The notes: a model not told the origin generated them from the sequence alone. 64,000 bases of DNA from Phaeosaccion multiseriatum (GCA_965112735.1 OZ218960.1:496001-560000), one strand, 5' to 3'. Positions 698 to 46,692 are shown, numbered from the stretch's first letter. Numbers and translations: made by a program.

Positions 698-3600
698 ATG
701 TCTAACGTTCTAGAGGGACAGCGTAGAATGCTCACGGCCTTCTTCCACGCCACGGGAGGACCCGACTGGTCTAACATCGCAGGATGGAACACGAAAGCAC
801 CAGTAGAAAACTGGGCCGGAGTGACGGTAGAGAATGACTATGTTGTGAAGCTCAATCTGTGGGCGAACCGCCTCAAAGGTGAGAGAGACGTGATTATGGT
901 TGTTCCGCCTGAGGTCCTGAAGAGTATTCTGAAGTATTTCCAGAATGTTCGGAAGTTTTCTCTCTGTTCATGCATCTAGATGTGTTGGGTCTAGAATATT
1001 CGGGAAGGACAATCAAAGCGGGACAAGAGAAGGCACGAGGCGCGGCATGGTGTGGTAGTTCAGCGACCCGTTCGCGTCCCTTTCACTTGATATTAGTGTG
1101 ACCAAAGAACTTTCCTTGCTCCGCAGGGACCATTCCGTTGGAGTTGGGGAAGCTGACAGAGCTTCGAGAACTCCACCTGTCAAAGAACAATCTAGAAGGT
1201 AGGTGGTACGCGTACCTGTTCGCGTCCCATTCACTTGATATTAGTGTGACTCAAGAACTTTCCTCCGCTCCGCAGGGAGCATTCCGAAGGAGTTGGGGAA
1301 GCTTTCAAACCTTCGAGAACTTAAACTGTCATGGAACTCTCTAGAAGGTGAGTGGTACGCGAACCCGTTCGCGTCCCTTTCACTTGATGTAAGTATGGCT
1401 GAAGAACTTTCCTCCGCTCCGCAGGGAACATTCCGCCCGAGCTTGGAAGTCTTGAGAACCTGGCGGTGCTCAACCTGCGGGCCAACGAGCTCACTGGTAA
1501 GTGGTACGCACACCCGTTCGCGTCCCTTTGACTTGATATTAGTGTGACCAAAGAACTTTCCCCCGCTCCATAGGGAGCATTCCAGCTGAGCTTGGAGGTC
1601 TGGAGAAGCTTGAGAAGTTGGGCCTCGCCGACAACAAGCTCACTGGTGAGTGGTACGCACACCCGTCGGCGTCCCTTTCACTTGATTTGAGTATGACCAA
1701 AGAACTGTCCTCCGCTTCGCAGGGAACATTCCACCCGAGCTTAGACGTCTGGGAAATCTTACGGTTTTAAGCCTCTTCTCCAACAAGATCACTGGTGAGT
1801 GGTACGCACACCCGTTCGCGTCCTCTTGACTTGATATTTGTATGACTGAAGAACTATCCTCACATCTCAGGGAGGATTCCGCCGCAATTTGGACAGCTTT
1901 CCAACCTTCGAGAACTTTGGCTCTCCGGGAACCGTCTAGAAGGTGAGTGGTACGCACACCCGTTCGCGTCCCTTTCACCTGATGTTAGTGTGACCAAAGA
2001 TCTTTCCTCCCATCCGCAGGGGACATTCCACCCGAGCTTGGAGGGCTTCAGAACCTTGAGAATCTACACCTCCACAGCAACAAGCTCACTGGTAAGTGGT
2101 ACGCACACCCGTTCGCGTCCCTTTGACTTGATATGAGTATGACCAAAGAACTCCCCTCCGCTCCGCAGAGGGCATTCCAAAGGAGCTTGGAAGTCTGACG
2201 AAGCTTGAGCAATTGTCCCTCTTCCGCAACCAGCTCTCCGGTGAGTGGTACGCACACCCGTTCGCGTCCCTTTGACTTCACTTGATTAGTAGGGTTGAAG
2301 AATTTTCCCCACATCTCAGGGAGCATTCCAGAGGAGCTTGGACAGCTTACGAACCTTCGAGGACTTCGGCTCAACGAGAACAATCTAGATGGTGAGTGGT
2401 ACGCACACCCGTTCGCGTCCCTTTCACTTGATATGAGTATGACCAAAGAACTCTTTTCTCCCACTGCAGGGAGCATTCCACCCGAACTTGGAGGTCTGGA
2501 GAAGCTTGAGGAATGGAACCTCTGCGAGAACAAGCTCAGTGGTAGGTGGTACGCGTACCCGTTCGCGTCCCTTTCACTTGATGTTAGTGTGACCAAAGAA
2601 CTTTCCTTCGCTCCGCAGGGAGCATTCCACCCGAGCTTGGAAGTCTGGAGAAGCTTGAGAAATTGCACCTCTCCCGAAACAAGCTCACTGGTGAGTGGTA
2701 CGCACACCCGTTCGCGTCCCTTTGACTTGATATCAGTATGGCTGAAGAACTTTCCCCGCATCTCAGGGAACATTCCGCCAGAACTAGGACACCTTTCGAA
2801 CCTTCGAGAACTTCAGCTCTACCAGAACAGTCTAGAAGGTAGGTGGTACGCACACCCGTCGGCGTCCCTTTCACTTGATTTGAGTATGACCAAAGAACTT
2901 TCCTTCGCTCCGCAGGGAGCATTCCACCCGAGCTTGGAAGTCTTCGGAACCTGAGGGTGCTCAGCCTCTGGGACAACAAGCTCACTGGTAAGTGGTACGC
3001 ATACCCGTTCGCGTCCCTTTCACTTGATATATGTATGGCTGAAGAACGTTCCCCACATCTCAGGGAATATTCCACCGCAACTAGGACAGCTTTCGAACCT
3101 TCGAGAACTTTGGCTCAACTGGAACAGTCTAGAAGGTAAGTGGTACGCACACCCGTTCGCGTCCCTTTCGCTTGATAGTCGTGTGACAAGAACGTACCTC
3201 CGCTCTGTAGGGAGTATTCCCTTTCACTTGATTGAGTATGACCAAAGAACTCTCCTCCATCTACAGGGAGCATTCCACCCGAGCTTGGACGTCTCGTCAA
3301 GCTCACCCATCTGTTCCTCCATGAAAACCAGCTCTCCGGTGAGTGGTACGCACACCCGTTCGCGTCCCTTTCACTTGATATCAGTGTGACCAAAGAACTT
3401 CCCACCCATCCGCAGGGAGCATTCCAAGAGAGCTTGGACGTCTTCAGAACCTTAAGCGACTGAACCTCAGCAAAAATAACCTCACTGGTGAGTGGTACGC
3501 ACACCCGTTCGCGTCCCTTTGACTTGATGTAAGTATGACCAAAGAACTTTCCTCCGCTCCGCAGGGGAAATTCCGCCCGAGCTTGGAGCTCTGCAGAACC

Positions 3601-6600
3601 TTCAGGATCTGTACCTCTCCAACAATGAGCTCACTGGTGAGTGGTACGCACACCCGTTCGCGTCCCTTTGACTTGATGTTAGTGTGACCAAAGAACTTTC
3701 CTCCGCTCCACAGGGAACATTCCCAAGGAGTTGGGGAAGCTGGCAGAGCTTCGAGGACTTTGGCTCCAAGATAACAATCTAGAAGGTAGGTGGTACGCGA
3801 ACCCCCGCCGCAGCCGCAGCAGTTGGTTGACCCGTTCGCGTCCCTTTCACTTTCTGTTAGTGTGGCCAAAGAACTTTCCTCCACTTCGCAGGGAACACTC
3901 CGCCAGAGCTGGGGCAGCTGATCAACTCAAAGAACTTTCCCCCGCTGCGCAGGCAACACTCCCAAAGAGCTCGGACGTCTCAGCCAGCTGACCGAATTTT
4001 GCCTTCACAGCAACCGGCCTGGTAAGTGGAGCGCATACCCGCTCTTGTCCGCCTCCTTTGGGCTCGTATGTGTATACTGACGCGGGCTCCATTACTGTTT
4101 GAATACGGCAGAGGACGGCACAGCCATGAAGACCTTACGAGAGAGATGGCTTAGTCATGCTGCCCTCGCATCTGCTCCTACTGCGGGCAATTTGACAAGT
4201 GATTCTTCGAGGCAAATTGACGCATTGGACTACAAAACGTATGCAGAGGCGATTTTGTACGGCATTAACCAAGTAGAGGCTCCGATTGCAGTGGGGATTT
4301 ACGGAGAGTGGGGTTGCGGGAAGTCCTTTTTGCTACATGCCATTCGCGAGCAGATATTGCAGCAGCAGAACAAGACGAAGGTTGAGGCAGGAGGGAGTGA
4401 CAAGGGTGCGCAACTACTTGCGCGACGCCTTAAGGGTGCGCGACGCCTCATTGCTTGGCTCGGTCAGTGGTATATGTGGCTGGTGATGGTCTGGTGCTTC
4501 GTGGGGTGGGGGGGCATCAGTGATACAGCCCCATACGGCCACTTCCGCAATGTGCCAGGGATAGTGGACGGAGCCGCTACACAGAGACCGGTCAAGTACA
4601 TCAACGTCGAGTTCAACGCATGTACGTTTACGATTGGCTGTGGGCGATGACTCACTCTCTCCTCCGATGCAATGCCTCCTCTTCTATTCGGCTGTGGCCC
4701 TGATCAGCATCGCGCCCCACCCCGTCTTCCTCCTGTCGTGCTCGCTGACGCTCAGGGCTGTATGCCGGCAGCGATAAGCTCTGGGCAGGCGTGATTCAAG
4801 CAATGTTTAAGGCCGTGGAGGAGCACTCTGACTACGGTGACGAGCTTCGGCTGAGCAGGCTTATCGAGGCGGTGAAGGAGCAGGGCTGGAGGAACTTCGC
4901 TTTCCCGCTGGGCGTGCTCGTAGTGGTAGTGCTGAGCGTACTGACTAGCCTTTCAAAGCTCGATTGGGTAGTGTCGCAACTGAGCGCGGTGTCCGCGGCA
5001 GTGCCTACCCTGCTCGGACTCGTCGGACTGACAGGCGTAGCGCTTCAGACAGGTAAAGTGATTTGTGTTTTATGCGCAAGTCTGAGCGTGTGGTCTCTCT
5101 CTCTACTCTCTCTTAGCTGCCGCCGCTCCCTATTCTCGTTTGCTATGCAGGCGTCTTAGTGTATAGAAATGCCCGGAAGCAAGGCGATATCATCGTTAAA
5201 GAGGCTCAAGACCTTGGAATGGGTGAACAACTCGGTGAGGCAGTATGCTTTGACCTCCGTAAGATTTTTAGCATCAGAGAGGTGCCTCTAACGTCCTTCG
5301 CTCCTGTGTTGTATGTGTCCAGGCTTCATGGCAAGTGTTAGCGATAGGCTTGAATTCCTGTATAAATTCCTAAAGGCCAGTGGCATCAGGCTCTCCGTGG
5401 AGGTGGATGATCTCGACAGGTCAGGAGTCAAGATGGTGTGTTTTTTTCAAGATGTGTGTTTTTATCTCGTGACATGCGTGGGACTTTGGCTTTAAATGTC
5501 CTTCCCCTCTCTGTTGTGCGCTGACTGTTTCAGGTGTGGTGCAAGTCAGGTGATGGCCGTGCTAGAAGCCACTATGCTCCTCCTCTGCAAACACGATGCT
5601 CCCGTGGTTGCCTTCCTCGCGGTCGACCCTCGTGTTGTGGTGACCTCCATCGAGGAGAGTTTTGGCCCTGTCATGCGTGAGGCGGGCATCAGCGGGTCCG
5701 AATACTTGGACAAGATCATCAACTTGCCCTTTTTTCTCCCCGAGGTAGATAAAGAGGCCCAGCGTCTCTTCATGACTGGCCTGCTTTGTGGAAACAATGA
5801 CGACTCAGTCAGGGAGAATCTCAGTGTGCTGGAGTCGTCTGTTTTGAACAGGGAAGGCTACGCATGGGCGAAGTCAAAGGCACCTAAGGAGAGCAGAGAT
5901 GCATCCAAACCGAGGCCGGTGGCTTCCACAGCGTTGAAGCGCGCTCTGTGCAGCTGGGACAAGTGGGATGTCGATGACGTGGAAAGTGGAGGGCCGGGCG
6001 GTGAGGAGGAGGAATGCTGGACAGAATTTGATCGCCTCTTGCCGGCGGTGAACGACGTCACCCCTACTGCAAGCAGTGCTGGCTTGGCTGCCAGAGTGGG
6101 AAAGGACGGACTTGCAGACGTGTGTGTATTTATGAACTGCATGATCATGGCGGGCTTGAAAGCCTGCTCCAAGCCCCAGGAGGCAAAAGGGACAGGAGAA
6201 GAGGCAGCAGACACAGGCGGAGGGGTGGGGTTTGAAGCAACTTCCGGGGGGGGAAGCAGCAACGGCGTGTCGTCAAACGCCGGCAACGACAGCGCGCTGC
6301 CTTCGCCCCATAGGCCCTCCAGCGGCAACGCTGAGGGGGGCGCGGTAAACGAGGGCAACGGCAGCGCGCCGTCTCCACCCGCCGTTAACGGCGACGCTGA
6401 GGGGGGCGCCCCACCGCCGAAGAGAGTGGTTGTAGGAGGAGTTGGAGTGCTGCGGTGCCAATGGGATGAGCTGGAAACCTTCAAGTCCCTCGAGCACTGC
6501 CTGGACAACAACCCGCGGAGGCTTAAACGCATCATCAACATCTTCAACGTGTTGCGAAGGTTGCTTCAGGCCAGGGGCGAGGAGGAATGGCACACCAACC

Positions 6601-7316
6601 CAGTTTTCCGGAAGAAGTTCATTAAATGGGTCATCCTCTGTGAGCAATGGCCGTACCGAACATCTGTGATAGTGACGCTGTTGGATCATCGCATCTTTGA
6701 GGGTGGCTCAGTAAAGCAGCGTAAGCAGAGCGCATGGCTGAAGCCACTCGTGGCTATGGAAGATGACATGAAGGACAACTTCGAGGTGGTGGAGCAGCTC
6801 GCGCACCTCCACCCCAAAGCCGGCAAGCTGCTGCAGATGGACATGGACCCAGAGCGTTTCTGGATGCTCATGCACACCGTGCCCCATCTGACGACCTCCG
6901 ACCTGAAGAGGGGCAGCCCCCTCTTGAGGAACAGTTTCAACCTGAGTCGGTCTGTGCGTGCGCAGGTGGCGACCGGATTCAACGAGCACTTCGTCTTCTC
7001 CGCCGTACAGCATCCGGAGTGCTTGAGAAAGTATGCAGGTGTCGGCCTTCTGAGCTTCCCCAAGGCGAGCGTGGTACAAGATCTTTTGACTTTTGATCAC
7101 CCTGTGTCCTCAGCGGGGGGGGGAGGAGGAACAAGAAGAGGGGGGGAAGGAGGAGAGGAGGATGGGGTTGAGGAGAAGAAACACTCAGAACCTCCCGCGA
7201 AGGAGGAGGATGGGGAGGAGAAGGAGGAACAAGAAGAGGAGGAGGAGGATAACGCCCCACTCAACTGGAGCTTTTTGGTAGAGCATCGAGACTTGATCCC
7301 TCCCTCCATCGTATAG
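698..7316 (+). CDS. LRR-cassette / KAP-family P-loop NTPase (LRRNT cap + ~19 LRR + TM-containing KAP NTPase), multi-exon
   Basis: Exon 1 698-878 encodes an LRRNT cap (LTAFFHATGGPDW..GW..W.GVTV..VVKLNL..NRLKG). 72-nt exons start at 1127,1276,1425,1574,1723,1871,2020,2169,2320,2470,2619,2767,2916,3064,3267,3416,3565,3714, followed by a 69-nt exon 3953-4021, then 4112-4621, 4756-5052, 5151-5234, 5323-5419 and 5534-7316. All are GT-AG and frame-consistent. KAP motifs: SD..DALDYKTYA, Walker A GIYGEWGCGKS, spliced FNAWLY, Walker B spliced DDLDRC, EYLDKII.LPF, NPRRLKRIIN, WVILCEQWPYRTS. Confidence 0.9.
1066..4040 (+). repeat. ~149-bp tandem array: conserved intron + variable 72-nt LRR exon (~21 units including 2 truncated)
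   Basis: Recurrent intron consensus GTRRGTGGTACGCACACCCGTTCGCGTCCCTTTSACTTGAT..AGTRTGACCAAAGAACTTTCCTCCGCTCCGCAG. Exons follow GxIPxELGxLxxLxxLxLxxNxLxG. Confidence 0.95.
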
Positions 7317-9043: not shown

Positions 9044-12000
9044 ATGGCGGATTCGGCACCAATGGCGCAGTCTGCGGAGAAGCTACATGCGCCACACCTT
9101 ACGCAGGTGGACACCAAGAGCGCGGGTGCGTGGCTGGATAGCCGCAAGTGGTATGAGCAACAGCATAAGGCTCTCGCGAGAAATTTGACACCAGAGCAGG
9201 CCCGGCGCAACCCGGAGGCTACTGTGCAATCGTGCCTAAAGCGCTCGGTAAGAATGCACATCATTAAGGAGATGTTCAGCGATGATGAGAGGACAGCCTT
9301 AACGGCCGACGATGCAGCAACGAGTGCAGCAGTGGAAGCCTCTTTCCTGGCAGCGATTAAACAGCTTGCGGGAAGGACAGCGGAGGCCTCACAGCGCAAC
9401 CCCGTGGAGCTGCAAGATGCTATAAGGAAGAGCCTAGTCATGTCCATGCTGGACAAGGAAGGTAACCACATCGACGTAGAGGAAAGGGTACAGAATCAGC
9501 TCCTTCCCCTGTATGATCTACTCGACAAAAGGGGGTTGGAAGCGGAGTTCATTAACCTCGACACCTACGCGTTCTTACCAACGCATGCCGTTCTGTTGAC
9601 GGAAAGCATTCTGGCCGGCCTAAGGCCCAATGAATTCAAACAGCACGTACAGAGCGCGGCAAGGATGAAGGGCTGGGACCAGCTGAAGAAGAACCCAGAT
9701 GCCTTTAAAAGACTCGTGAAGGAGGAGGCAAAGCTTTTCAGGTCTGCAGACCAGCTGATGGCTAAGCAGGCCAAACAGAAGAAAGACGGCAAGCAAAAGG
9801 AAACCAAGAAGGGTGACCAAAAGAACAATGGCAAGAAGAGCGACGGGAAAGATGGAGGCGGCAAGCAGGGCGGTGGCAAAGGCGACGGCAGTAAGGGAGA
9901 TGGCAAAGCTGAGGGAAATCGTGACGGAAAGAAAGACAAAGACAAGAAACTCACGCATGACCCCAACAAGCCAGGCCCATGTGACCACTGCGGGAGGCCC
10001 AACCACGACAAGGAGCACTGCTGGAAGCTACACCCGGAGCAGAAGCCTGCCAGCCTGTCCCAAGGACACCGGAGAGTTACTTTCGAGGAGGAGCTCACCG
10101 AGGACGCAGCAGCAGACGCAGCGGCGGAGGAAGCAGTCAAGAAGGGAGTGGCAGCAAACCAAGACGCAGGTATGCACCAGCTGTTCCTTAGAGATGATGG
10201 GATGGCGGAGCTCTCTCTCTCGGAGGAGGGACCGGTGGTTAAGATCCCCATCTTGATTGACAGTGGGTCAAGCACCACCAGCCTTAACCTCCCAGCTTTT
10301 CGCCAACTGCGTCACCATTATGGTACCAAGGCCATGGCGCTTGAGCCCATGCCTAGTGCGGTCCAAATGGACACAGCAAATGGCGCAGCAGAGATGACGG
10401 AGATGACTCCTCCACTTACACTGCGTTTCAGCACACCACAGGGGCCTGTCGAGTTGACGGGGCTCCGCCTGGGTTACGAGAGCAGCGATCAGCCTGCTCC
10501 TCTCGTGATCATAGGACGGCAGACAATCAAGGAGCATTTGCCGGACTTGGACCTGAGCAGCCTCAGCAGCAGTGCGGCCAGCGTCCATAACAATCTACAG
10601 CAGCGACGAGCAGCGGTGGTGGAGCAGGTGCCCCTGTCTGAGGACCTGCCCTACATGTTCATGGAGGTGCAAGTGCTGACGGAGGACGAGATCTTGTTTG
10701 ATTCAATTCCCCTCTCTTTCTCTTCCTTCGATCAGGAGGACCACAAGGAGAGAGAGCTGGACAAGCGCTACTCTGATTTGGCCCATGTTTTCGAGAACGC
10801 CAAGGCCAACGGCCTCCCCAGTGACCAGCAACGTAAGTACCACGACTGGTTGTGGTCTCATAAGGATCAGTTTCGTTCTGAACTGATAGACGACCCTCCG
10901 GCTGAGGTGGAGCCGATGAAGCCTCGCTGGAAGCAGAATTTTGTGTGCCCCAAAATCCCCTTTCGTCGCATGAAGCCTAACATGAGGGAGTGGCTTGGAG
11001 CTTTCCTGTGCTTGCTGGCAACTTTTGGCCTTGTGTACAAGAACGCTCAGGCTTGCGCAGCATCACCAGCGCTCGTCACCCCTAAGGCTTCGGGAAGCTT
11101 TCGTGCTACTGTGGACTACCGAGTGGTCAACGAAGGACTCCACCCACAGCACTGGCCCATGGAGACCATCATTCCCCAGCTGCAGCAGATACTGTCCAAG
11201 GCGAGGCGCCTTGCAGTAGCAGACATGAACAAGGGCTATTGGCAATTCCCTGTTGACAAGGCAAGTCAGGAGATGTTCACCATCGCCACCCCGGACGGCC
11301 TTTTCACCCCGACGCGAGTCCCTCAAGGCCTGAGCATCAGCGTCGAGTACTACCAGAGCACCATGCAGACAATCCTCGGAGATCTTTTCGGTAAATGTTG
11401 TGTGGTGTGGCTCGATGATGTGCTGATTTGGGGCGAGGACGATGATGACTTGCTGAACAATTTGACTTTGGTTTTCGATCGATTCGAGAAGGCCAAGCTT
11501 TTTTGCAGCGCACCCAAGTTTGTACTGTATGCTTTGGAACAGACTTACTGCGGTGTGACTTGTGGAGAAAATGGCGTGGGGCAGGACCCTGCACGCCTTC
11601 AGGGGCTGGTGGATTTGGCTGCCCCCACAGACGGAGGGCAATTGATGCAGTTCCTTGCCTCTCTCAACTGGTACCGCAGCCACCTCCCAGACCTCGCTCG
11701 TGTCTCTCTCCCTCTCCAGCAGCTTCTCAATCAGACTCTGGACGGACTGGAGGTGCGCAGCTAAGCACGGGCTGCGAAGCGGCCCATCACAGCAGAGGCG
11801 TGGACGCCCGAGTGTGCAGCGGCGTTTGCAGCGACGAAGGAGCTCTTGTGCTCTGCGGTCACGCTCACGACTCTGAAGGAGGGCTACGCCGTGTGCCTGT
11901 ACACAGATGCATCGCATTTTGGGTGGGGCACCATGATCACGACTTTCCCCAAGGAGCTGTACTCCCCCGGCAAGTCTTTGGGGGACATCCCTCATGAGCC

Positions 12001-13936
12001 ACTGGCCTTTGGCAGTGGCCTTTTCAGCGGCAGTCAGCTCAACTGGCCTACATTGGACAAGGAAGGGTATCCAGTGGTACAAGCATTTCTGCGGTATGAT
12101 TACCTCCTCTGGGGCCCTGACGTTATTGTCAATACGGACCACGCCAACGTGTGCTACATTTTTTATCCGAAGCAGCATGTTACGGCCCTCAGCAAGGCTA
12201 CTGCACAGCGCCTTCAAGGCTGGGCAGTCATCCTCGGCCAATTTCGGTTTCTTTTGCAGCACCTCCCGGGCGAGAAGAATGTGTGGGGAGACATGATCTC
12301 CCGCTTTCTCGCATTGCCTCCAGTGGCAATGCGGCAGCGACACACTCTCTCCCTCCCTCCCCCCCCTCCCCCTGCGTGTCCCACTCTCGTGTCCCTTGAT
12401 GCTCTCAGGTTAAGCCAACAGGAGCATGCCCCACTCTCTCAAAAGGGGGAAGGGGTAGATGGGACTGACAAGATTGTGGAGCCCGTTTCAGATATTGCTC
12501 TCGTGTGGCATGCAGATATGGAGCTCTACAAGACAGCAGCGGGAGAGGTGTGGGTTCCGGCAGCGGACAAGCAGCTTCAGCTACGGTTGTGTACAGAGGC
12601 GCACGCAGGAGGAGCATGCCATAGGCTCAAGACAGCAACCATGGAGCAGCTGCGTTTGATACATTGGCACGGCAAGGCAGATGACGTCAGCGCTTTCATC
12701 AAGCACTGCCTTCACTGCGTGGACTCTAGGGCAGGTGACAAGATACCCCGCCCCCTTGGTGAGACCCTCCACGGCAGCAAGCCTGGAGAGGTGCATCACA
12801 TGGACTGGCTCAGCATTGGAGAGTCGGACTCTGAGTTTGACAAGGGTATGAACAAATACCTCTTTGTGCAGATGGACGACCTCAGCGGCCTTTGCCTACT
12901 CACGGCTCACCCGAGTGTGCACGCTAATCTGGCAGCACGCGACCTTCTTCTGTTTGCCTCTCAGCATGGCATGCCGAGTATATGGGTGAGTGATCAGCCT
13001 ACTCACTTCAAGAATCAGCTCTTGCGGGAGATGGCGGACATTTATAAGGTGAATCATCACTTTTCAGTCGCTAACGTAGCGCACAGCAACGGCACGGTGG
13101 AGCAGCTAATGCGGCAGATCATTGTGGCTTTTCGAGCAGTTCTCTCTGAGCACAAGCTCCCGCCGACGGAGTGGGAGTCAGTCTTGCCCTTGGTCATGTA
13201 TGGTCTCAACTCAGCAGTGCGCAAGCGGACTGGCTTGTCTCCATTGGAGATCATCACAGGGCGGAAACCAGAGGCATTGCTTTCAGCGGAGCTTATCAAG
13301 CTTGGAGAGCAGTGGCACGTCGAGCCCATCAGCACGGAGAAGCTTCAAGCCATCTTGGCTGATACGCGGCAAGCTTTGGACCAGATGCACAAGACGGTGG
13401 CAGGCTCTCGTCAGACGCAGCGAGCTGCGGGGCGTAAGTCAGCCTCCAAGGGCAAGTTGCCCAACTTCATGGTCGGAGAGTTTGTTCTGGCAGCTCGTGT
13501 ACGCAAGAAAGGACGCATGCACAAGCTCACGGCCACCTGGCGCGGGCCCTACAGAGTGCTTGATGCCTCTCATGCCCACGTCTACCTCATTCAGCACCTC
13601 CTCAGCGGCGAGCGGCTTACGGTACATGCCGAGCGGCTCATGTTCTACCACGACGCCACTTTGGACATCACGACGGAGCTGAAGACCCACATCGAGTCGT
13701 CGGATAACCTGGCAAGGTATCAGATTGACTCCTTCGTTTCGCTTCGCAAGGAGCAAGGCGAGTATGAGGTGTTCGTTCACTGGCTTGGCTTTGAAGCCGA
13801 TGAGCGCACCTGGGAGCCTCTTCATCAGCTTATGGAAGACATGACTGTTGCTACCCTGCAGCGGTTTCTCCGACAGATGAAGCTCTCGACAGCGGTCAAG
13901 CGTGACCTGCTGCACATGCACAAGCTGCGTGTGTGA
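9044..13936 (+). pseudogene. gag-pol polyprotein with one in-frame TAA at 11762-11764
   Basis: ORFs 9044-11764 and 11846-13936 share a frame. Motifs: CCHC knuckle CDHCGRPNHDKEHC, protease LIDSGS, RT VDYR/DMNKGYWQ/WLDD, RNase H YTDAS, integrase H..H..CLHC, MDW/SDQ/NGTVE, WRGPY, chromodomain YEVFVHWLGFEADERTWEP. Confidence 0.92.
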
Positions 13937-27971: not shown

Positions 27972-32563
<4,592 letters not shown>

Positions 32564-45237: not shown

Positions 45238-46692
45238 ATGGCGGGCGCTAAGCGCAGCAGCAGCAAAGGCGAGCCACAGAGACGCGCGTGCGACTTCTGC
45301 AGGAGGCAGAAGCGTGGCTGCGACCACAAGGTTCAGTGTGGCCAGTGTAAGAAGCGCGGCATCACCTGCACGTACTCATTCAGGCGCCCCGAAGATGAAG
45401 GGCAATCCCAAGCCCCAGCCCCTGCGTCTGTCATCGCCGAGCCTCTCAAGGTGACAAAGAAGAAGCCCATAGTGAGCCCCGTACCCAAGTCTCAGCTGCC
45501 CGTCGGGGGCGTGCGCTTCACCTCGGCAGCAAGGCCCAAGAAGCGGCCACTGGTCTCCGACGTGGAGGACTCTATCGAGGAGGGGGAGGAGGACTGGGTA
45601 CCCAACGGCACCACCAGCAGCAGTGCCGCCCCAAGCCGACCCAAGCGATCTCGGCGCAGGAGCGTAAGAGTACCATCGACCCCCATCAGAGATGACGAGT
45701 CGTCATCCTCCTCGGAGGCGGAGCAAGATAGGGACACAGGCAGGTCGGGGGAAGGAGAAGGAGAGCAACAAGAGGCAGGATGGGGCGGCCAACGGCCGAG
45801 TCGGCTCGCAGACGTCCTCGATGATGAGAGTCTCAACAGCAGCATGACTGTGCTCCCCCCGCCCGTGAGGAGGAGGGGCAGCAGTAGCTGCAGCAGCAGC
45901 ACCACCAGCAACATCGTCATCCCCCCCTCCACAGCCCGCCCCCCCATGGCGGTGCTGATCCCGCCCAACACGGCGCACGACTTCAACCCACCCACCGCGC
46001 CGGAGGGGGGCTGGGGAGGCACGGGGGCCGGGGAGTTGGGAACGGGCTGGGGAAGGACGCCGCTGGGTGAGTTGCGTAGGGATGGCAACCCGCCGCCCGT
46101 CGGGAGTCCCACACGCAAGGGGCGCAAGGTCGGTCTGATGGCCAAGAACACGGCAGGCAGCAGCAGCAGCAGCAGCGGCAGCATCGGAAGCACAAGTGTT
46201 GGAAACGGCCATTTGTTCGCACCCTCCTATCCCGCCTTATCGGACGCGGCGCTGGAGGCGTTGGTCATGTGGGTGCCCCCTGTGGAGGGCGGTATGCAGA
46301 GGAGCACGAGTACCAGCAGCAGCAGCAGCAGCAGCGTGAGCAGTGCAGGGGGAGGAGGAGGAGGAGGAGGAGGAGGAGGAGGAGGAGGAGGAAGGTCCTT
46401 CCCTTCGGTGACGTCTTGGGCGAACTACAACGGAGTCAGCACGGGCAGCAACGCCGGTAGCCTGCACGCGGGCATTCCAGGCCGGGGCATGTCCATCGGA
46501 GGTGACGGTGGGGGCAGCGGGGCAGACGCAATGCTCAGCCTGGGAAGCGCTGGCTCCTGCCTTCCGCCCCCCATCCCTACCCCAAGAGGAGGCCTGCCCA
46601 TCACGAGGCAGAACTCTCTGGCCGAGGCGGTGGGCAAGCTGGACGAGGATTTACACTCCTCTATGGACGACTCGGTGCTGGACCTGTTCTAG
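45238..46692 (+). CDS. Zn(II)2Cys6 binuclear-cluster transcription factor, intronless
   Basis: ACDFCRRQKRGCDHKVQCGQCKKRGITCTYS at the N-terminus of a 484-aa ORF. Confidence 0.88.
   Translation: MAGAKRSSSKGEPQRRACDFCRRQKRGCDHKVQCGQCKKRGITCTYSFRRPEDEGQSQAPAPASVIAEPLKVTKKKPIVSPVPKSQLPVGGVRFTSAARPKKRPLVSDVEDSIEEGEEDWVPNGTTSSSAAPSRPKRSRRRSVRVPSTPIRDDESSSSSEAEQDRDTGRSGEGEGEQQEAGWGGQRPSRLADVLDDESLNSSMTVLPPPVRRRGSSSCSSSTTSNIVIPPSTARPPMAVLIPPNTAHDFNPPTAPEGGWGGTGAGELGTGWGRTPLGELRRDGNPPPVGSPTRKGRKVGLMAKNTAGSSSSSSGSIGSTSVGNGHLFAPSYPALSDAALEALVMWVPPVEGGMQRSTSTSSSSSSSVSSAGGGGGGGGGGGGGGGRSFPSVTSWANYNGVSTGSNAGSLHAGIPGRGMSIGGDGGGSGADAMLSLGSAGSCLPPPIPTPRGGLPITRQNSLAEAVGKLDEDLHSSMDDSVLDLF

Follow-up and report, generated by a model that had tools for sequence, protein, structure and literature searches.

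An array of one-repeat leucine-rich repeat exons joined to a KAP-family NTPase in Phaeosaccion multiseriatum, with probable diversification through germline cassette evolution

A stretch of 64,000 nucleotides (nt) of Phaeosaccion multiseriatum DNA (GCA_965112735.1, OZ218960.1:496001-560000; hereafter the window, with positions counted from its first letter) carries a gene in which a row of very short exons, each encoding a single leucine-rich repeat (LRR), is joined to a nucleoside triphosphatase (NTPase) module of the KAP family. The introns between these exon cassettes resemble each other far more than the exons do. We consider it likely that this is a germline-encoded and expressed receptor-like gene, and that its diversity has arisen through germline evolution of the cassettes over generations and is not programmed within the individual. 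A preliminary description of the locus had instead proposed that the array is rearranged, by DNA shuffling and/or combinatorial exon skipping, to build a repertoire for ligand recognition.

Results

Structure and expression of the gene

Splice parsing on GT/AG sites (donors of the form GTRRGTGG) yields a single gene on the plus strand, with its ATG at 698, its stop at 7316, 25 exons, and a coding sequence of 4317 nt for 1438 amino acids (aa) free of internal stops (Table 1). Parsing and translation confirm the earlier count of 18 exons of 72 nt plus one of 69 nt, all in phase 1 on both sides and all encoding one LRR. The array introns are all in phase 1: the first two nt of an exon complete a codon and its last nt opens the next. 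Each cassette exon corresponds to one 24-residue plant-type repeat, GxIPxELGxLxxLxxLxLxxNxLx, and the peptides of all 18 exons of 72 nt fit the type I register known from brown algae (see below), save for single substitutions in E5, E6, E8 and E10, that in E8 being an E in place of the first G. With cassette lengths all divisible by 3 and introns all in phase 1, the frame survives the gain, loss or reassortment of cassettes, and the statement that any cassette subset keeps the frame is correct. For exon 1 no Pfam match was obtained, and inspection by eye gave no evident cleavable signal peptide.

Tandem Repeats Finder (TRF) detected a 149-nt period across 1066-3723, corresponding to a 72-nt exon plus an intron of ~77 nt. 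Homology to the array extends from 1066, within intron 0 (intron position 16), to 4050, within intron 19 (position 29). The same 14 nt, ACCCGTTCGCGTCC, are found at both of these edges (1066-1079 and 4037-4050, the right copy being diverged), an arrangement that agrees with exchange between short direct repeats as its origin. No cassette-like sequence was found elsewhere in the 64 kb or on the minus strand. Long stop-free open reading frames (ORFs) run through array exons and introns with shifting frames (2295-2954 on the plus strand, 219 aa; 2048-2773 on the minus strand, 241 aa), and the three stop triplets of the intron consensus share a single frame on inspection by eye; such ORFs are probably a by-product of the repeat.

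Read data were available as short de Bruijn contigs, which break within the array and drop rare variants; our statements on joints cover the joints listed. Runs X1, X4 and X6 stem from one sample and consist of unspliced DNA contigs (pieces of 100-160 nt inside the array). Run X5 stems from another sample and study and, labelled 'DNA?', is evidently RNA. A 3126-nt contig of X5 has GT..AG joints at 3783>3951, 4020>4111, 4621>4756, 5049>5148, 5233>5322 and 5416>5531, in agreement with six modelled introns, I18 to I23, including all four within the KAP module. The gene is expressed, and the model of its constant part is correct. The X5 contig also carries an in-frame insertion of 24 nt after 4426, resembling a tandem duplication and situated past Walker A but ahead of the first hydrophobic segment, together with a G>T change at 4194; the contig would come from a different strain or allele, or else from a very close paralogue. 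In the DNA runs, T>C variants at 910 and 959, in unique intron-0 sequence, occur at about half depth, which suggests two haplotypes in the sequenced sample.

Divergence and reassortment of exons and introns

Mean pairwise identity is 64% among the exons (54% at third codon positions), as against 83% among the introns as a whole, 92% in their first 41 nt and 74% in the remainder. According to Nei-Gojobori estimates the exons differ by 0.47 at synonymous sites (pS; 0.42 in framework codons) and by 0.33 at nonsynonymous sites (pN). At 10 variable positions, the x residues of LxxLxLxxN among them, the ratio pN/pS amounts to 1.04, versus 0.27 in the framework; with synonymous sites near saturation, this is no proof of positive selection. 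An exon pS so far above the intron divergence shows that the array is not a young neutral duplication.

Two exon classes can be distinguished, in the order AABBBABBABBABABBBA, class A (..NLREL.L..N.LE) being made up of E1, E2, E6, E9, E12, E14 and E18, and class B of the remaining exons. Exon pairs are all at most 86% identical, and several intron 5' blocks are 100% identical. All 16 intron pairs with at least 90% identity have flanking exons that are just 50-86% identical, and the pairs I1/I10 and I4/I12 have private variants in common despite flanking exons of different classes. Near-identical introns between dissimilar exons imply either that introns and exons have been reassorted, or that exchange has occurred among introns alone. 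Which of the variants C and G stands at intron position 34 goes with the class of the exon before it (Fisher p = 0.013), and a subfamily of 3' halves, ..CATCTCAG (I5, I8, I11 and I13), is always located upstream of class A exons (p = 0.008); within this subfamily identities are 74-89% for the 3' halves, 76-86% for the exons and 88-95% for the 5' blocks. The introns are not fully homogenised, as both their halves retain variants linked to the class of the neighbouring exon. TRF periods of 297 and 446 had suggested duplication of higher-order blocks, which was not supported, since exon identity is flat (0.60-0.67) at all offsets.

The intron length of 76-79 nt given earlier applies to 16 of the array introns; the two others measure 131 nt (I14) and 167 nt (I18). 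Both longer introns represent cassettes killed by a deletion of ~85-95 nt that took out the donor site, I14 marking the loss of one cassette through a deletion of ~95 nt. The deletions run from exon nt 10 to intron position ~28 and from exon nt 34 to intron position ~50, respectively. In the RNA of run X5, I18 is spliced out as one intron, dead cassette included (GT..AG joint 3783>3951). On the evidence of sequence comparison, evolutionary reassortment and cassette loss have evidently taken place in this array, by a mechanism that we infer.

The near-invariant 5' block of the introns

The 16 regular introns align nearly gap-free. The remark that their first ~40 nt are nearly invariant proved accurate, 30 of the first 41 columns being invariant. 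Column identity is 0.90-0.94 in columns 1-40, drops to 0.53 in columns 41-50, close to that of exon third positions, and returns to ~0.79 in columns 51-70. A 29-nt intron motif has 16 occurrences in the 64-kb window at up to 3 mismatches, all of them within the array, where 0 are expected. The claim that these introns are unlike every other intron in the window holds for the six other introns of the gene; for the rest of the 64 kb it can be said that the 29-nt motif is absent.

Conserved blocks flanking an island of free sites are more easily explained by site-specific constraint than by conversion tracts, and private variants common to distant introns indicate that sequence exchange occurs too. 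Constraint and exchange would thus both act on the introns, and for the 5' block we lean towards constraint. The likely branch sites, TGAC at -25 and CTTGAT at -37, lie at or past the 3' edge of the block, and a role of the block as a splicing element is a guess.

Six introns were folded; z was -2.4 for I2, the only one with a perfect dyad, and ~0 for the other five. There was no covariation between intron positions 3 and 34, and the array intron had no match in Rfam; on these three grounds a structured intron RNA, mirtron or snoRNA was rejected. The intron core had 0 matches among metagenome contigs. Recent insertion of the introner type was rejected by inference, since the introns occupy the position known from published brown-alga genes and their 3' halves co-diverge with the downstream class A exons.

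The KAP NTPase module and its relatives

The 'different signalling domain' that had been noted behind the array is a KAP NTPase and not a ROCO module. It scores 37.3 and 44 bits (cutoff 20) on the N- and C-terminal halves of Pfam profile PF07693 (KAP_NTPase), and Pfam searches with the C-terminal pieces detected no Roc or COR, the only other families being P-loop ATPases below the cutoff. Walker A (GEWGCGKS) is found at residue 580 and Walker B (DDLDR) at residue 841, with hydrophobic segments, identified by hydropathy only, in between at residues 628-646, 733-751 and 764-788. Membrane segments between the Walker motifs are a hallmark of the KAP family.

A HMMER search with the last exon against 1.84 billion representatives produced a single match below 1e-30, Chrysoparadoxa australica CAM9617389.1 (E = 4e-65, 43% identity). 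The two proteins are colinear over the whole KAP module, including Walker A, FNAW-LYAGSDKLWAG, DDLDRC and NPRRLKR, and have an intron at FNA|W in common. In contrast, CAM9617389.1 has the architecture Ank-TPR-KAP, with a sensor of ankyrin repeats and three 42-residue TPRs and no LRRs, and its TPRs are coded contiguously (126-nt period) with no introns between them. The intron motif of the window was not found at the Chrysoparadoxa locus, a blastn comparison of that locus with the window gave nothing, and the GC content is 49% there as against 53-63% in the window. A word-based homologue search returned distant KAP proteins only.

In ten further library matches KAP occurs alone or with WD40, Ank+C2 or a few other N-terminal domains, and once as KAP-NACHT-LRR; LRRs directly N-terminal to KAP occur in none of these ten. 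These architectures imply that repeat-plus-KAP is a general theme, of which an LRR directly before KAP is a rare form. Protein P0033 (1857 aa) has an N-terminal KAP_NTPase, a NACHT domain and C-terminal LRRs, that is, KAP within an NLR-like architecture. In 2004 Aravind et al. are said to have characterised Kidins220/ARMS-type proteins as N-terminal repeats followed by a KAP NTPase with internal membrane helices. In these and other repeat-plus-KAP proteins, unlike the present one, the repeats are ankyrin or WD40. We know of no other repeat-plus-KAP protein with a one-repeat-per-exon array.

Comparison with other one-repeat-per-exon arrays

The preliminary description had pointed to Ectocarpus as an analogue, and the length (72 nt), register and phase of the cassettes indeed make them equivalent to its type I LRR exon. 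Type I exons of 72 nt, with the register GxxPxxLxxxxxLxxLxLxxNxLx, were described in Ectocarpus ROCO genes by Zambounis et al. (2012, PMC3341825), who also found them in five LRR-kinases and, among 164 LRR loci that are neither ROCO nor kinase, in 46, distinguished type II exons at a different offset, reported inactivated intronic cassettes and recombination in LRR domains, and raised the hypothesis of somatic recombination. Exons of 72 nt and the same phase are present in four brown algae, nt 3-71 coding for 23 residues (Teng et al. 2024, PMC11378527); these authors see a further source of diversity in the alternative splicing of LRR exons and list up to nine LRR-exon splice variants in Ectocarpus ROCO genes. 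The ideas of exon shuffling, alternative splicing and somatic recombination have thus already been published for brown algae (2012, 2024). Neither PMC3341825 nor PMC11378527 treats KAP or intron conservation.

The present array shares with the brown-alga type I arrays the single LRR per 72-nt exon, the register and phase, the variable exposed residues and the evidence for intragenic recombination. Its two truncated cassettes, both on the same strand, may correspond to the inactivated cassettes within introns known there, where reverse-strand intronic LRR exons also occur; none lies on the reverse strand here. It differs in its partner, a KAP NTPase with membrane segments instead of the ROC-COR of the ROCO arrays. 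Its introns of 76-79 nt are nearly constant over the first 41 nt, and intron conservation is not discussed in either of the two papers on the brown-alga arrays.

Outside the brown algae, the one-LRR-exon arrays of Tetrahymena, whose expansion has been attributed to unequal crossing-over, likewise consist of exon-plus-intron units of fixed size and uniform phase that repeat at the nucleotide level, but their exons are 90 nt long, encode another LRR type and have a different phase, their introns measure 122-257 nt, and their origin is independent. Lamprey VLR and insect Dscam also consist of modular cassettes that can in principle be combined into many receptors. However, the germline VLR gene is incomplete and its donor cassettes lack splice sites, whereas here the ORF is complete and its constant part is expressed as modelled; orphan cassettes, as VLR-like donors, were not found in the 64 kb. 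Dscam relies on docking/selector RNA pairing, whereas here five of the six introns tested fold no better than shuffled sequences and Rfam gives no match.

Discussion

Germline evolution of the cassettes

In the protein that we propose, 19 plant-type LRRs and an N-cap form a cytosolic solenoid, which is joined to a KAP P-loop NTPase embedded in the membrane. The repeats may bind a ligand and the NTPase may act as switch or effector, to judge from ROCO, NLR and Kidins220-type proteins. The array consists of 149-nt units of the brown-alga 'type I LRR exon' kind, in which unequal crossing-over, deletion and recombination inside the introns may add, remove and reassort repeats over evolutionary time. 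Exposed residues have diverged freely, with the framework conserved. The introns, mainly in their first 41 nt, are probably held near-constant by two causes, i.e. exchange limited to introns and purifying selection on cis elements for the splicing of many look-alike 72-nt exons with very short introns. Reassortment, dead cassettes, diverged exposed residues and a complete, expressed gene are all what one would expect of a known kind of cassette evolving in the germline.

Several observations weigh against this interpretation. The short contigs leave room for rearranged or skipped forms, and two X5 joints of the GT..AG type would in fact skip cassettes: 1196>1423 would omit cassette 2 and 1196>3062 would connect cassette 1 to cassette 14. 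Furthermore, X5 has near-zero contig depth over cassettes 8-10 (2103-2603) with neighbouring cassettes covered; such a depth hole proves nothing, and its source could be skipping, a copy number that differs by three cassettes, or a gap left by assembly or filtering. In the introns, no splicing role is known for the conserved stretch of 33 nt past the 5' splice site, which has no conserved RNA fold and no Rfam match. Finally, the over-dispersion test on invariant columns (42 of 76 columns, versus 18 expected under evenly spread changes) has its contrast inflated by the shared ancestry of the copies.

Combinatorial splicing and programmed rearrangement

Combinatorial splicing would generate an LRR repertoire at the RNA level, near-identical introns and equivalent splice sites giving rise to many in-frame skipping isoforms. 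Frame retention by any cassette subset and the Ectocarpus splice variants (Teng et al. 2024, PMC11378527) agree with such a process, as would the two skip-like joints and the depth gap at cassettes 8-10. The anchors of these joints are, however, just 25-48 nt long and lie in sequence common to many cassettes. Inside the array, moreover, X5 mostly yields contigs in which a partial cassette match gives way to 17-31 differing letters ahead of the next exon start; such contigs come from paralogous LRR genes that are transcribed, and the skip-like joints stand in their midst. With introns of 77 nt, intron definition is expected and exon skipping is uncommon, which also weighs against combinatorial splicing, and no intron-intron docking or selector structure was found in the six introns folded. 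The earlier suggestion of exon skipping is therefore left with two joints in its favour and with their short anchors and paralogous surroundings against it, and we regard combinatorial splicing as unlikely.

It is also quite improbable that the 41-nt block is a dedicated cis signal for the reassortment of cassettes within the individual, through either DNA exchange or controlled splicing. If it were, the LRR receptors of the organism would form a repertoire that varies somatically and is built on two NTPase chassis at least, ROCO and KAP.

Under programmed DNA rearrangement, the 41-nt block, or its 14-nt core with the dyad, would serve as a recombination signal where somatic cells delete, duplicate or exchange cassettes, in a process resembling lamprey VLR assembly or V(D)J joining; we regard this as highly improbable. 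In its favour, one 14-nt sequence contains both the start (1066) and the end (4050) of the array, a filler-like insertion of 26 nt is located at the dyad centre of I18, and the introns are decoupled from their flanking exons; the hypothesis had also been raised for brown algae (Zambounis et al. 2012, PMC3341825). Against it, the germline gene is complete and is expressed as such, with I18-I23 spliced as modelled, unlike the incomplete germline VLR gene. Across the array, none of the listed joints was found in the DNA contigs of X1, X4 and X6, and a single back-joint in X1, 3201>2912 with four letters between, is unexplained. Both cassette-killing deletions break outside the 14-nt core, the dyad is perfect in one intron only, and neither the minus strand nor the rest of the 64 kb holds any cassette. 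All the features observed are equally predicted by unequal exchange of the ordinary kind, meiotic or mitotic, and the active DNA rearrangement that had been postulated for this array finds no support in these data.

Simple recent tandem duplication, in which the introns would be alike because the copies are young while exons and introns drift neutrally, agrees with the regular 149-nt period and with introns about as similar as the closest exon pairs (85-86%) beside them, but is refuted by the divergence figures: the intron difference (0.17; 0.08 in the 5' block) does not equal the exon synonymous difference, the sign of such a duplication named in the preliminary description, the latter being 2.5 to 6 times larger; exon pairs stop at 86% identity while 5' blocks reach complete identity; and exon classes that differ by ~50% have introns that differ by few sites.

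Other features of the window

The coordinates of the gene features are listed in Table 1. Upstream of the gene, positions 1-697 held nothing recognisable, and no sign of an HNH endonuclease gene. A Ty3/gypsy-type retroelement with a chromodomain (9044-13936, plus strand) lies 1.7 kb downstream of the gene and has two long ORFs, with RVT_1, RNase H, integrase core and Chromo domains. Two more long ORFs on the plus strand encode a C2HC zinc finger (28379-31282) and a fungal-type Zn2Cys6 cluster domain (45238-46692). Exact look-ups of three window ORFs, including the C2HC and Zn2Cys6 ones, retrieved no public record.

Table 1. Features of the LRR-KAP gene in the window
Feature	Position	Strand	Remarks
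Exon 1	698..878	+	Start codon and LRR N-terminal cap; 60 codons plus 1 base
Intron 0	879..1126	+	Final 61 nt (1066-1126) correspond to the array intron from intron position 16 onward (local alignment to reference unit)
Cassettes E1-E18	1127..3785	+	One 72-nt exon each, introns I1-I17 between; splice parsing; phase 1 throughout
E1-E6	1127-1198, 1276-1347, 1425-1496, 1574-1645, 1723-1794, 1871-1942	+	72 nt each
E7-E12	2020-2091, 2169-2240, 2320-2391, 2470-2541, 2619-2690, 2767-2838	+	72 nt each
E13-E18	2916-2987, 3064-3135, 3267-3338, 3416-3487, 3565-3636, 3714-3785	+	72 nt each
I1	1199..1275	+	First of 16 regular introns (76-79 nt); consensus GTRAGTGGTACGCACACCCGTTCGCGTCCCTTTSACTTGAT, short variable stretch, then GACCAAAGAACTTTCC..YAG (intron alignment)
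Dyad	1357..1374	+	ACGCGAAC-CC-GTTCGCGT, 8+8; perfect in I2 alone, imperfect in most other introns
I14	3136..3266	+	131 nt; full intron copy, 10-nt exon stub (3211-3220), intron copy from ~position 28
I18	3786..3952	+	167 nt; intron with 26-nt insertion (3805-3830) at dyad centre; 34-nt truncated cassette (3892-3925) fused to intron 3' end
Last LRR exon	3953..4021	+	69 nt; RNA joints on both sides
Intron 19	4022..4111	+	First 29 nt (4022-4050) are a diverged array-intron 5' end, 22/29 identical; right array edge
KAP-family NTPase module	4112-4621, 4756-5052, 5151-5234, 5323-5419, 5534-7316	+	Five exons, the last including the stop; Pfam PF07693

Significance

The locus is an extension of a published system and not a new mechanism. 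New here are the KAP partner and the compact intron with its near-invariant, sharply bounded 5' block of 41 nt. With a unit of only 149 nt, in which this conserved block stands beside sites diverged to the degree of synonymous ones, it becomes directly testable whether the block is a splicing element, a recombination substrate, or both. LRR cassettes on a KAP module, together with a nearest relative that bears TPRs, imply that, after ROCO and NB-ARC, KAP is seemingly a third NTPase chassis on which repeat sensors have been swapped. In brown algae the leading candidates for immune receptors are arrays of this one-LRR-per-exon design, and the question whether they vary somatically dates from 2012.

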